Of a DNA stretch of 64,000 nucleotides, positions 18,998 to 57,900 are shown piece after piece. The notes beneath the pieces were generated by a model, which was not told the origin of the DNA, did not search any database, and saw nothing but the letters and a program-made list of their open reading frames with translations. The translations under genes were made by a program, and so were the position numbers. Origin of the DNA: Ylistrum balloti (lineage: Eukaryota); NCBI RefSeq assembly GCF_031769215.1, contig NW_026782588.1, positions 62,001 to 126,000 on the forward strand, given 5' to 3'. Position 1 is the first letter of the stretch. Each line of letters begins with the position of its first letter.

Positions 18998-21900
18998 CTG
19001 AAACAAAGAAACTAAAGCTGAATTAAATTAATATATATACAATAATATTTCGTTGTCGTAACCATTGACAAATTCCTACAATTAAAAATACATTTCCTAC
19101 AATCAAAATTGTACAATTATAATTAGGGTAGAAATGCATTGCAAAATCATAAGGTACGTTCAAACGGTGCATTAAATTCTTGGTCTCGATGTTGGTATTA
19201 AGATGTGTCATTAACTGTTATTCCATCTAAACCATGATATCAAACCCCGAAAAAATCATTGTATTCCATTGCAGAATGCAGATTCGTTTACGACTATACA
19301 TTTTAACAGAGTTGAAATTTAAGAATCCTGACGACTACTTACTATTCACACAGGTAACTGCTGCCGTGTACTGGTCGCGACTACTACTTCCTCGAAATAC
19401 CCCAAAGCCACCAAACGGACAGTCAACAATGGTCAATTCTGTACCTGTGCACTGGCATAAATCCATCCAGGTCGGTTGCTGACGGTTGTACAATCCAAAC
19501 TCATGACTCACCGTGTTTGCAATGCCCGCTCTGACGTAAAATCAATGGCTTGGCAATATATCAGCTTCATAAGTTGGTATCATATAAAAGTTTAGTCATT
19601 GTCTTATCTTAAAACTTACTATACACATTATTAAGCATTATTGAAATAGTTTCCAGACGACAAACCAGTTTGTCAATACAGCAATAACAAAATTCTAATA
19701 CACTGTGCTGTAAAATAACATGTTTTTTTTTCAACATTCCTTGAAACTTTAACGTAAAATGTCAAGTTTGACGCTCTTCAGAAGTTGTCTAGGTTATATT
19801 TTGTGAGATACAAAATTATCGCATAAGTGTAAAGACTATTTATGAGGAAGACTTTCATTTGTTGGAAAAATTAATTAAAAAAAAAAAATGGCGCAGGAAA
19901 CGTTTTATTTCTGAAGAAGTGGATACCATGACATATCCAGCATGTCTGGCAGCACTGCTACCTAACTATTGATATTAATTTGTTTATCATACTAGATATC
20001 CTCAGAAGTAACTTACTTGTATCCAAGCATCCGACATGCCACTCTGGCGTCCTTATCGTCCCAGTACCAGCCCCCAACGTACCCCCAGTACCCGGAGAAG
20101 TACACTTCCACCCGCCCCTGTCCATCAGCAGACATGTCCACAAGTCTCACCTCCACAGATGTGGTATCTATCACCAAACACGATCATTATCTATTGTCAC
20201 ATATCAAATGGCAGAAATTTGTCTTCCTTGGTTACCAGGCACAAAAATAAACCCACACTTTTAACTAAGAGACATAACTCAAGCCTTTTGTTAGTCATCA
20301 ATTTATAGTATTTGATGTTGTGACACCAATATTGTAAGTGATGTTGTGATGTTGATATAGTACCTTATGAGATTCTGACATTGTACCTAATGTTATGCTT
20401 CTGATATTGTACCTGCTGTTGTGATTCTGATATGGCACTTGTTGTTGTGATTCTGATATTGTACCTGATGTTGTGATTGTGACATTGTACCTGATGTTGT
20501 GATTCTGATATTGTACCTGATGTTGTGATTCTGATATTGTACCTGATGTTGCGATTCTGATATTGTATCAGATGTTGTGATTCTGATATTGTACCTGATG
20601 TTGTGATTCTGACATTGTACCTGATGTTATGCTTCTGACATTGTACCTGATGTTGTGATTATGACATTGTACCTGATGTTGTGATTCTGACATTGTACCT
20701 GATGTTGTGATTATGATATTGTACCTGCTGTTGTGATTCTGATATGGCACTTGTTGTTGTGATTCTGATATTGTACCTGATGTTGTGATTGTGACATTGT
20801 ACCTGATGTTGTGATTCTGATATTGTACCTGATGTTGTGATTCTGATATTGTATCAGATGTTGTGATTCTGACATTGTACCTGATGTTGTGATTCTGACA
20901 TTGTACCTGATGTTATGCTTCTGACATTGTACCTGATGTTGTGATTATGACATTGTACCTGATGTTGTGATTCTGACATTGTACCTGATGTTGTGATTAT
21001 GATATTTTACCTGATGTTGTGATTATGATATTGTACCTGATGTTGTGATTCTGATATTGTACCTGATGTTGTGATTCTGACATTGTACCTGATGTTGTGA
21101 TTTTGACATTGTACATGATGTTGTGATTCTGACATTGTACCTGATGTTGTGATTCTGACATTGTACCTGATGTTGTGATTCTGACATCGTACATGGTTAG
21201 AGTAAGGTTAATGGTCACTGACATTGTTGGTGGTCTTATGATACCGACATTGTTCGTAATATTAATTTTGAAAACACAGTAAATACGGAGGCCTCGTATG
21301 ATATGTATAAATATCCATCGGCCATCGGTTGAAGGGATTGTCGAGACACCTACATTGATTTTAATGGCTCTCAATTAAATTGATAACTATCTATTTGTTT
21401 TATGTTCTATGTCTGTGATATAATATTGGTGTCTTGATAATGGGGCAGATTGCATCGAAAATTTTTTGACAATTCACTTGTCCGTACGGTCGTTATTACT
21501 TCATTTATCACACACATATATAACGTGGTAACCATTGAAACTACATTAATATGGAAACTTAAGAGGTCATGTATATGTAAAAAAAACATGTAGTCTGCAA
21601 AGGAGTAGATGCATTAAGGGTCAATTTTGGCCCCAGCATAGATTTTCTTAATTTTTATATCATGCAAACATGGACATATGACATTGATAAAAAAACAAGT
21701 TTTCAATAATTCTGACAATTCGTTGCCTAGCAACGGGCCTGGAAACCAACCTACTCTTTACCGTCTATTTGCACATTTTAGTGATATTTCACTGTTTTTT
21801 TTTATTATTTGGTGAAAATATTTAATCAATTTTTACATATCAATGGTATGATTTAAAAATCATATCATATTTGTGATCAACCATCATATATTACATGTTT

Positions 21901-54900: not shown

Positions 54901-57900
54901 TATGCGTCATAAAATAAGCACCAACCCTTCCAAAATGTATAGAACATACCCTGTTCTATGTTGAAATTACAGAAAAATAGATTTCAAGAACTAAACATGA
55001 ATATAAAGAAGATTTTGTTTTTATTATTTCATACCTAACAGAAACCTATCAGAGGGTCAGACACTTTTCTAAATTACTGTTATGTTGCCAAACATTTCCA
55101 TTCAATATACCTGTGTCATTAAAGCAAACTACACCAGCATCGTCTTTATGTGTACATGTCGATTTACCCCAGCCAGGAAAAGGACAATCAAATATGCTGG
55201 ATTCAGACCCGGTACACCCAACATCCGACATCCAGATCAGACCTGACCCCTCTCCGAATACAGAATATTTATACGCAGATCCATGGCTATAAAAAGAATA
55301 TTAAAAATAATGTTTTATAACAAATCATCAATGTCAATATGTATTGCATAAAATTTCAGCTGGTGATGTTCGCTAATAACCAACATACCTATTCGACGTA
55401 GATTGCATTCGAATAAGAATACATACAAATCTTTCCTGAGGTAACATTCCTATCTACGGAATATCATTTAGCATATATTCGGTTGGATTCGTGAAGAATG
55501 AATTTCAATACGGAACGGGACAGCGATCTTAGTCAAGTGAAAATAGACATGGTAATGTGGATTATAGTAGATTCTGCTACGCTTTGTTTTACTCTTGGTG
55601 TGCGAAGCGTAGCCAACGTACTTACGTACCTCAGAGCTAGTACGTCTAACACTGGTTATTTGTCTGAAGATGACCGTGTATTCATGGAAACATTACATTT
55701 TGATTCACTACTGCTTGTGTTACAAGGTCTTAAGTCTATCCCATTACTTAATCAGATAAGCAATTATTTACATGGTGGGCGTCGTGAAGAAGCGGATAAC
55801 GATTCCCCTTCTGTTCCTACATTAACAAATTATTTTTTGTTCATATTTGTCCATGTCTCTCCAAATTATGATTTGGAACTATGATTGGACTCGTTGATAT
55901 TCTCTTGTTTCTCGTTTTCATTTATCCAGATATGAGGTTATCTGGATCGGACCTCGATTTATAAAATCGATATGTCTATAACATGTCTACTCTTCCAGAA
56001 CATTCCAAAACTAACCAAGAATTCTATTGCCATTGGTCTAAAACTGCTTTTTTGTCTACATGTCTATAGTTATTCCTTCGGATACTTAAGCGTAGATACA
56101 ATACATAATAAAAATAGGAAATCTGGTAAAAAAATCAATGGCTTGTGGTAGATCTTGTTACGCTATATCGAGTTCACTTGTTAAAGTCTGTGTTCTAAAG
56201 AACAAAAAAATGGTGTCCTATAGACCATATGGTTTCTCTTGAGTCATTACAGGTAACATTCGGCGATTAATATTCTAATACCTCTATTTGAGCTACTTTT
56301 TCACTATGTACAGTTGAAACTCGTTGTCTCGAAATCGAGTCGAAATTCCGTTTGAGTCGAAATAATTTTCAAGTTCCGATTTTTTTCCCTTCTATATCTT
56401 TGTAATTTTAGTTCGGATGACTCGAATTTCATTGAGTCGAAATTTCGGTTGAGTCGAAGCGATTTTTCAGTCCCTTTAATTGTAAAGCCAGAGAAAACTC
56501 ACTCGTTGTCTCGAAGTTAATTTTTGCTAAAACATCGACACGTCTTCTGACGAAATCAGTCAGTCATGGCTAATTACGGCGTATCGGTGGCTATCGTACA
56601 CATAACGCTTGGTATCTGGCGATTAATTACCAGTCTAATTATTCGATTAAAATTTGACTTCTTATTGGTATCACCATTCTGTAGAAGTGACTTACATGTA
56701 CGTTAAAAATGTAGCTCGTTTACACAAAACATGAAACCTTAGCTTGGTTGCGTGCATATTCAGGAACGATAAAAATGACACCGTCAAACCAGTACGGACT
56801 TTTTAACGAAATCTGATCCCCAATATTGTTTGGACAATGGAGTGCTGAAAGTATTTTTTCATAAATAGAGTCTATATCAGTGCGTGATTTGTTAAGACTA
56901 GCGCTTGTACAATGTTTTCTTAAACATTTAAAAAAGCGTTTTTCATATGTTCATTTATTCTTATGAGTTCATAATGATTTAAACTTGTAGCTTTATACAT
57001 CGTTTCTTGTAGCGCGGGACGGAACGACATGAGTACAAATGTATTTGATTGGAATTGTTATTACATGTTTTGTTGTTTGAATGAATTAACAATAAAAGGA
57101 CAAAGTAGAATTAAATTCATTTGTTTATTCACTGCCATTAAAAAAACATAAAATTACGCTGCTTGTGTACCTCGTACAACCATAATCAACACCAGGAAAC
57201 TGATATCGTCATCCTTATTTATACACTTCGTTTGAGTCGAAATTAGCTAATTTAGCTATATATTGCATGTACATATTTTTATCAATATTTTATCTACATT
57301 TTACTTGTATTTTCCTATATTTATCTTCATTTCACCGTTATTCTACATCTATTTTACCTGTATCCAAGCATGCGACAGACCACTTTGGCGTCCTTGTTAT
57401 CCCAGTAGTCGTCACAAACAGTCCCCCACTGTCCGGAATATAACACCTGCACGCGACCGGAACTTTCAGAAAAACCTCCCAATAGTTGAACTGTTTGTCC
57501 ATCTTCATCAAGGAAAATACGAATATATAGACATTTACTTGTTATCATGAAAGTCATTAACTTCATCACTTGTAATCACGATAGTCATTTACTTCATCAC
57601 TTGTCATCCCGATAGTCATTTACTTCATCACTTGTCATCACGATAGTCATTTACTTCATCACTTGTCATCACGATAGTCATTTACTTCATCACTTGTCAT
57701 CACGATAGTCATTAACGTCATCACTTGTAATCAAGTTAGTCATTAACTTCATCATCTGTCATCACGATAGTCATTAACTTCATCACTTGTCATCACGATA
57801 GTCATTTACTTCATCACTTGTCATCACGATAGTCATTTACTTCATCACTTGTCATCACGATAGTCATTTACTTCATCACTTGTCATCACGATAGTCATTT

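Follow-up and report, generated by a model that had tools for sequence, protein, structure and literature searches.

Alternating six-cysteine and four-cysteine SRCR domains encoded by a tandem-SRCR gene of Ylistrum balloti

SRCR domains are modules of innate immunity and are classed into groups A and B by their cysteine pattern. The DNA analysed here, a stretch of 64,000 nucleotides of Ylistrum balloti (assembly GCF_031769215.1, contig NW_026782588.1, positions 62,001 to 126,000; hereafter the window), carries on its minus strand a gene whose product, as far as the window encodes it, is made up solely of a signal peptide and a run of 16 SRCR domains in tandem. The domains, D1 to D16, alternate strictly between an ordinary six-cysteine group-A form at the odd positions and a four-cysteine form lacking both partners of the C2-C7 disulfide at the even positions. 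A preliminary description of the window, made from its letters alone, had pointed out this alternation and had taken each pair for a heterodimeric functional unit with a remodelled, possibly carbohydrate- or lipid-binding, face.

The gene and its exons

Stop-free segments bearing SRCR motifs run from ~57.5 kb down to 19.3 kb on the minus strand in a six-frame scan, and their combination with splice-site and phase analysis yielded a model of 32 exons (57502..19343), all with an AG acceptor and a GT donor, which splice to 5433 nt and to an 1810-aa frame with 0 stops. Each of the 16 domains is encoded by two exons and is split where LGY is followed by S or K. The exon phases alternate between 1 and 2, the first-half exons beginning in phase 1 and ending in phase 2, and the second-half exons doing the reverse. 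The limits given in the preliminary description, 57502 and 19343, coincide exactly with the outermost acceptor and donor sites of the SRCR run. The signal-peptide exon came out of a scan for hydrophobic stretches that come after a Met and before a phase-1 donor. Spliced onto D1, this exon restores a junction that matches the N-terminus of the Pecten maximus protein P0001 (...PTADGQSVRLSGG; ...TADGQSVRLSGG), and the exon at 61507-61441 is confirmed by this homology. The features of the gene are:

61441..61507, minus strand: exon 1, start codon and signal peptide (22 codons + 1 nt, donor GTTAGT)
55111..57502, minus strand: D1, odd, six-cysteine group-A SRCR domain (exons 57502-57358 and 55286-55111)
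53716..54717, minus strand: D2, even, four-cysteine SRCR domain (exons 54717-54561 and 53915-53716)
33817..52868, minus strand: tandem array D3-D12, ~4.9 units of 3.87 kb, with one odd and one even domain each
51974-51824 and 51563-51391, minus strand: exons of D3, odd, tandem array
49834-49678 and 49538-49351, minus strand: exons of D4, even, tandem array
48105-47955 and 47693-47521, minus strand: exons of D5, odd, tandem array
45943-45787 and 45647-45460, minus strand: exons of D6, even, tandem array
44214-44064 and 43802-43630, minus strand: exons of D7, odd, tandem array
42073-41917 and 41777-41590, minus strand: exons of D8, even, tandem array
40344-40194 and 39933-39761, minus strand: exons of D9, odd, tandem array
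38204-38048 and 37908-37721, minus strand: exons of D10, even, tandem array
36475-36325 and 36064-35892, minus strand: exons of D11, odd, tandem array
34333-34177 and 34037-33850, minus strand: exons of D12, even, tandem array
31030..32426, minus strand: D13, odd, six-cysteine domain (exons 32426-32276 and 31202-31030)
29026..30665, minus strand: D14, even, four-cysteine domain (exons 30665-30509 and 29219-29026)
28072..28835, minus strand: D15, odd, six-cysteine domain after a Thr-rich mucin-like linker (exons 28835-28613 and 28244-28072)
19343..20167, minus strand: D16, even, four-cysteine domain with one extra Cys (exons 20167-20017 and 19530-19343)

The last exon of D16 has a strong donor at 19343 (ATA followed by GTAAGT) with an in-frame stop 6 nt further on, and the protein would end either at this stop or in a short further exon, as in a second P. 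maximus protein, P0173. No CUB, ZP or transmembrane exon is recognisable up- or downstream of the SRCR run in scans of the open reading frames (ORFs) of the window. The encoded protein is probably N-glycosylated.

The two domain types

In an alignment of the 16 domains, the eight odd domains have six cysteines, at C2, C3, C5, C6, C7 and C8, whereas the eight even domains keep C3, C5, C6 and C8 and have neither C2 nor C7, just as the preliminary description stated. The six-cysteine group-A arrangement (C2-C7, C3-C8 and C5-C6, the connectivity being read from the Cys positions) is therefore seen in 8/8 odd domains and in none of the 8 even ones. Both types have no C1-C4 bond and are encoded by two exons per domain, the latter being the group-A rule (PMC3100851); group B, with its C1 and C4 and a single exon, does not fit either of them, as C1 and C4 are absent and the domains are split between two exons. 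Half-domains of both types score 31.9-51 bits against the Pfam family SRCR (PF00530, cut-off 26.1), the sole miss being the second half of D16 with 24.1 bits.

The GTVC of the odd domains becomes GYIG, GFVG or GYVG in the even ones, and the string WG[YF][IV] followed by a residue other than Cys is a near-specific marker of the even type. The even domains have in common an insertion of 2 residues after RLV and another of 3 residues before TWM, the latter being visible against CD163 as well. Sequence identity amounts to 41-58% among even domains, 50-63% among odd domains and 34-47% between the types, and the alignment supports the two as distinct conserved subfamilies.

Two other marks that had been proposed for the even type are less specific. 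The PTWM motif is present in 8/8 even domains but was rejected as diagnostic, since P[TSI]WM strings are frequent among SRCR domains of the ordinary kind. Aromatic richness was likewise rejected as a global property, F+Y+W being 16.9 per even and 15.9 per odd domain and equal per residue, while a local gain in Tyr and Trp stands, with means for Y+W of 12.7 per even and 9.7 per odd domain.

The extra Cys reported for D16 is indeed there, two residues before C5, and is absent from the P. maximus ortholog. The D14-type domains of P. maximus and Argopecten irradians have an extra Cys five residues before C8, which D14 of the window does not have. The resulting odd-numbered cysteines of D14- and D16-type domains may be free thiols for intermolecular bonds.

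Cassettes and the tandem array

The units of the array are 97.2-98.8% identical to one another by self-BLAST. The protein sequences of D3, D5, D7, D9 and D11 are 100% identical, the odd copies differing at one synonymous site only; those of D4, D6, D8 and D10 are 98-99% identical, and D12 is a diverged end copy with 90% identity to them. Because these ten domains come from one repeated unit, the window contains four independent pairs and not eight, which reduces the weight of the earlier statement that the pattern holds in strongly diverged pairs and recent repeats alike. The statement itself stands, as the four diverged cassettes (D1-2, D3-4, D13-14 and D15-16) all alternate and the alternation thus extends outside the array.

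The array starts upstream of an odd domain, and its end lies 33 nt beyond an exon of an even one. The linkers at the odd-even and even-odd junctions are equal, 11 residues from C8 to the next RLV. Judged from this repeat structure, from the roughly mirrored odd and even clades and from the intact cassettes of the related genes, the pair is an evolutionary unit.

Related scallop proteins and the origin of the even type

An exhaustive profile search with the second half of an even domain, followed by a cluster look-up, identified as the closest protein P. maximus XP_033754354 (P0001), named ‘DMBT1-like’ in RefSeq and ~68% identical to the window model. Word-based searches added the second P. maximus gene, P0173, which lies on the same chromosome as P0001, and A. 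irradians P0174, and the profile search a 208-aa protein of Mizuhopecten yessoensis with one even-type domain (P0080). The strict alternation of the window recurs in P0001, P0173 and P0174, that is, in two genes of P. maximus and in A. irradians, and no cassette with a lost or doubled member occurs in the four genes. A search with one even-type domain gave 0 matches above 50% identity outside these scallop proteins, and a search with the M. yessoensis even domain matched only itself.

In a maximum-likelihood (ML) tree, one clade (100/99) unites the 21 non-identical even-type domains and another (98/77) the odd domains of these genes, the topologies of the two being roughly mirrored. Each of D1, D2, D13, D14, D15 and D16 groups with the domain at the corresponding position in other species: D1 and D2 are 79.6% and 77.6% identical to domains 1 and 2 of P0001, correspondingly, D13 is 80% identical to domain 9 of P0001 and domain 12 of P0173, D14 is 76-80% identical to the orthologous domains of P. 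maximus and A. irradians, the ortholog of D15 is domain 14 of P0173, and that of D16 is domain 15 of the same protein, with 76% identity. The middle units group by gene, which points to independent expansion or homogenisation.

Between species, identity is 70-80% for even and 65-80% for odd domains; being as conserved as the odd type, the even type is constrained and not decaying. Its features (WGY[IV]G, the two insertions and a Ser/Tyr loop) are kept in 21/21 domains of four species. The tree shows a single origin of the even type, in the scallop lineage, and the searches a restricted distribution.

A Thr-rich mucin-like linker of ~28 residues (28750-28835, minus strand) is the sole long inter-domain spacer of the chain and separates D1-D14 from D15-D16. 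In P. maximus, the annotated P0001 stops after a D14-type domain, at the position of this linker, while P0173 reads through.

Loss of C2 and C7 in other SRCR proteins

Paired loss of C2 and C7 has been described for group-B domains of the CD163 family, such as CD163 SRCR8 (Herzig et al., PMC2906472), group B having 6-8 cysteines (PMC2906472). A 2024 survey of invertebrate SRCR genes lists groups A and B and a new 7-Cys group C only (PMC10855680). A classification by Cys pattern of 2,988 full-length domains in 290 proteins, a sample biased towards the relatives of the query, gave the following numbers:

Group B pattern: 1,801 domains of 2,988
Group A pattern: 1,013 domains of 2,988
Group B minus C2/C7 (M130 domain 8, M160 domain 11, WC1-like): 43 domains of 2,988
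Group A minus C2/C7: 38 domains of 2,988

About 15 of the 38 group-A domains without C2 and C7 are not from the scallop family but from proteins of Acanthaster, Asterias, Argonauta and Octopus and from another Argopecten protein, and they do not alternate there. They occupy separate long branches of the ML tree, which force at least 4 origins. Paired C2/C7 loss is therefore recurrent, and its occurrence in group B is published. Unpaired occurrence, which the preliminary description had counted against a paired module, is thus found for four-cysteine domains generally but not for the scallop even-type clade. The other finding that it had held decisive, an existing catalogue entry for such domains, is half present: the loss is on record for group B (PMC2906472), but no named four-cysteine group-A SRCR class was found in the literature, where the matches to ‘four cysteines’ concerned CTLD or CUB domains, and searches of the literature on scallop SRCR and byssus found no description of one.

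The cation/ligand site

According to a recent unifying model, SRCR domains bind their ligands via a conserved cation site (Reichhardt et al. 2020, PMC7043408). Site 2 is made of two Asp directly after C2 and a Glu or Asp four residues after C7, and site 3 of the second of these Asp, an acidic pair before C5 and an Asn before C7 (PMC7043408). In the family alignment, the even domains have G-Y-Y, G-P-R, G-S-Y, G-G-W or similar in place of C-D-D and no C7 segment, so that site 2 is gone in all of them. The residue identities behind these site numbers are taken from the DMBT1 SRCR consensus as we presume it to be, and agree with every residue type that the paper names. Among the odd domains, the site 2 triad is complete in the D1 type (CDD, with D at C7+4) and the D15 type (CDD, with E at C7+4), not kept in the D3 type and incomplete in D13 (CDR, with Y at C7+4). 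With the triad retained in the D1 and D15 types alone, at most two places in the chain offer the classical binding mode.

On this alignment, the lost disulfide lies beneath the canonical cation/ligand site, and Tyr and Trp occupy that place in the even domains. The remodelled face claimed in the preliminary description can thus be identified with the canonical cation/ligand site, but its proposed carbohydrate- or lipid-binding character found no support.

Predicted structure of the domain pairs

Di-domains of the P. maximus ortholog P0001 were modelled by AlphaFold2 with matched alignments, with the following mean predicted local distance difference test (pLDDT) and predicted template modelling (pTM) scores:

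P0001 D1-D2, odd-even junction: mean pLDDT 90.9, pTM 0.85
P0001 D2-D3, even-odd junction: mean pLDDT 86.2, pTM 0.72

The models show the SRCR fold, with one helix and strands in each domain. The variable loops of the even domain have confidence values of 76 and 73 when the odd domain precedes it, versus 58 and 62. In Foldseek searches the di-domain matches structures of SCARA5, M2BP, DMBT1, MARCO and CD163 (E 1e-12 to 1e-24), and the predicted two-domain arrangement superposes poorly on the solved tandems (TMq 0.55-0.59, root-mean-square deviation 6-8 A). The models give a hint of a specific odd-even interface and hence of a paired module.

Other features of the locus

A 1.1-kb duplication with 94% identity (60605-61671 and 62100-63204) includes the signal-peptide exon, and there are accordingly two candidate first exons, 61507-61441 and 63039-62973, which differ in one residue (L/F), the second exon copy being 94% identical and located 1.5 kb upstream. 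Intron 1 contains a 31-bp minisatellite of 13.8 copies with 93% match (57537-57965), which begins 35 nt upstream of the D1 acceptor, and a complex satellite with periods of 56, 84, 112, 140 and 224 bp (59505-60669).

The intron between D15 and D16 is 8 kb long and contains three adjacent ORFs (22412-24806, minus strand). One of them, of 332 aa (23409-24407, minus strand), matches DDE_Tnp_4, a transposase of the Harbinger/PIF type; neither of its neighbours matches a Pfam family. One of these, of 205 aa, contains what we take by eye to be a SWIM-like Cys/His motif. Downstream of the SRCR gene and on the opposite strand, an uninterrupted 351-aa frame (8618-9670, plus strand) matches 2OG-Fe(II) oxygenase and DIOX_N and looks like an intronless gene.

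Interpretation

The locus is most readily explained, and we think probably correctly, as a gene of the scallop family (Pectinidae type) that encodes a secreted, multivalent multi-SRCR chain built of canonical-plus-variant cassettes. The chain consists of two-domain cassettes of four exons each, in which an ordinary group-A SRCR domain comes first and a derived ‘e-type’ domain second. The e-type is a group-A derivative of single origin in the scallop lineage, which has lost the C2-C7 disulfide, with WGT[VI]C changed to WGY[IV]G, and also the acidic residues of the canonical Ca2+/ligand site that stand beside C2 and C7, and has gained the 2-residue insertion after RLV and the 3-residue insertion before TWM. 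The four diverged cassettes are older than the split of the scallop genera, and the D3-4 cassette was then multiplied by recent tandem duplication of the 3.87-kb unit, independently or with homogenisation in each gene. The product may work outside the cell as a multivalent binder or agglutinin, functionally similar to DMBT1/SSC5D, in which cation-bridged classical binding would be possible only in D1 and D15, the e-type would give the preceding domain a fixed structural partner and/or offer a cation-independent Tyr/Trp surface, and the repeat number would set the length and the valency.

Several points weigh against this explanation. The function as a multivalent binder or agglutinin is purely one that we infer. 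A search of sequencing runs with positions 53600-57600 gave one DNA-type match and no RNA run, for which reason the exon joins rest on the splice consensus and on the RefSeq models of other scallops. The locus could give shorter products, given that P0001 ends after its D14-type domain. The even copies D4, D6, D8 and D10 differ at three sites, all of them nonsynonymous, which could mean relaxed constraint, although these are tiny numbers, and the ratio of nonsynonymous to synonymous rates between D4 and D12 is ~0.7, with too few differences for an interpretation. Strict alternation results from cassette duplication and is by itself no proof of a functional heterodimer. The contrast in pTM is based on a single run for each junction, with different domain pairs, shallow family-specific alignments and pTM and pLDDT only, and the even-odd value of 0.72 is fairly high, so that both junctions may be rigid.

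The same material bears on a less probable, though by no means negligible, alternative, in which the alternation is the footprint of the duplication of a two-domain, four-exon cassette and the e-type a tolerated passive spacer with no specific interface or new face. The mirror-image odd and even clades and the A-e unit of the array explain the alternation without functional pairing; against a passive spacer stands the retention of WGY[IV]G, the two insertions and the Ser/Tyr loop in all 21 domains of the four species. C2/C7 loss recurs in many unrelated SRCR proteins and is thus easily tolerated, and the acidic triad is also lost in most of the middle odd domains; against this, the e-type is as conserved between species as the odd type, and no cassette has lost or doubled a member in the four genes. 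Both linkers are equally short and the even-odd pTM is itself fairly high, yet the A-e arrangement has the higher pTM and the better confidence of the e-type loops. The heterodimeric functional pair of the preliminary description is accordingly left with conserved odd-even cassettes and a higher odd-even pTM in its favour, and with an alternation that duplication explains; its proposed check by di-domain modelling came out in the expected direction, with weak support from the single run per junction.

A further-reaching reading makes the e-type a new four-cysteine SRCR subclass with a cation-independent aromatic surface in place of the universal cation-bridged site, forming an obligate heterotypic module with the preceding canonical domain, and the chain a series of eight bipartite recognition units of variable copy number. 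As a whole we regard this as unlikely; that the pair works as a heterotypic functional module, with a new mode of binding, is plausible. A reading of the e-type domains as relics in decay, with all or part of the locus non-functional or a mis-assembled repeat region, is very improbable: the missing RNA match, five near-identical 3.87-kb units of the kind that assemblies can mis-count, the nonsynonymous-only differences of the recent even copies and the DDE transposase ORF inside the 8-kb intron before D16 would suit it, but 1810 codons in 32 exons have no stop or frameshift and canonical splice sites throughout, the four retained cysteines are invariant, orthologous domains are 70-80% conserved in other genera having RefSeq models, and the unique diverged cassettes outside the array alternate as well.

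Under the favoured explanation of a chain of canonical-plus-variant cassettes, the e-type family amounts to a natural experiment, in which the C2-C7 disulfide and the overlying cation site are both removed from a domain that is under constraint equal to that of its canonical neighbours and always follows directly after one. Should the pair prove to be a functional unit, it would represent a second, cation-independent use of the SRCR fold and give a hint why vertebrate receptors have kept C2/C7-less domains, CD163 SRCR8 for example, at fixed positions. Otherwise the gene would be a further lineage-specific expansion within an immune-type gene family of bivalves, of use chiefly for annotation.

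Comparison with known systems

The domains resemble those of the group-A SRCR proteins (MARCO, SR-AI, SCARA5, Mac-2BP, LOXL2-4 and sea-urchin SRCR proteins) in the match to Pfam SRCR, the lack of C1 and C4 and the two exons per domain, and Foldseek gives a TM-score of 0.86-0.94 (target-normalised) to SCARA5, M2BP, MARCO and SR-AI. The scallop odd domains have the full set of six cysteines of this group, whereas the even domains differ from it in having 4 Cys, without C2-C7, no acidic cation-site residues and two small conserved insertions.

DMBT1/SALSA/gp340 and SSC5D are, like the scallop protein, long secreted chains of tandem SRCR domains with copy-number-prone repeats, and the scallop chain has a Thr-rich linker before D15. 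DMBT1 differs in its group-B domains, in the cation sites present in all of its domains and in its CUB and ZP domains, none of these features being seen in the scallop protein. The marks of a DMBT1 ortholog (group-B repeats, SID linkers, CUB and ZP) are missing here, with no CUB or ZP in the ORF scans of the window or in P0001, P0173 and P0174, the Pfam lists of which are SRCR-dominated. Judged by domain content, the RefSeq name ‘DMBT1-like’ is a statement of similarity only and not of orthology.

The sporadic four-cysteine group-A domains of Acanthaster planci, Asterias amurensis, Argonauta/Octopus and A. irradians (XP_069122420) have the same cysteine pattern as the even domains (00101101). 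They differ in belonging to other clades with long branches, in their non-alternating order (eeAAA, AA?eeAA, eAee) and in lacking both WGY[IV]G and the signature of insertions.

The closest parallel in terms of the lost bond is found in CD163 SRCR8, CD163c-alpha SRCR5, CD163L1 (M160) SRCR11 and the WC1-type domains, in which the C2-C7 partners and the DD after C2 are lost together (PMC2906472); group-B C2/C7 loss is also seen in the proteins P0061, P0030, P0072 and P0057. As in the scallop gene, the CD163-type domains hold fixed positions inside repeated domain cassettes, and a structure of CD163 SRCR5-9 that includes the C2/C7-less domain has been solved (PDB code 8h7j). They differ in being group-B domains with C1-C4 present, 6 Cys and a single exon, and in being vertebrate domains of independent origin, with one variant per 5-9 domains versus every second domain in scallop. 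From comparison of these patterns, the best-supported view of the e-type variant is that it is the counterpart, within group A, of the group-B domains already known to lack C2/C7.

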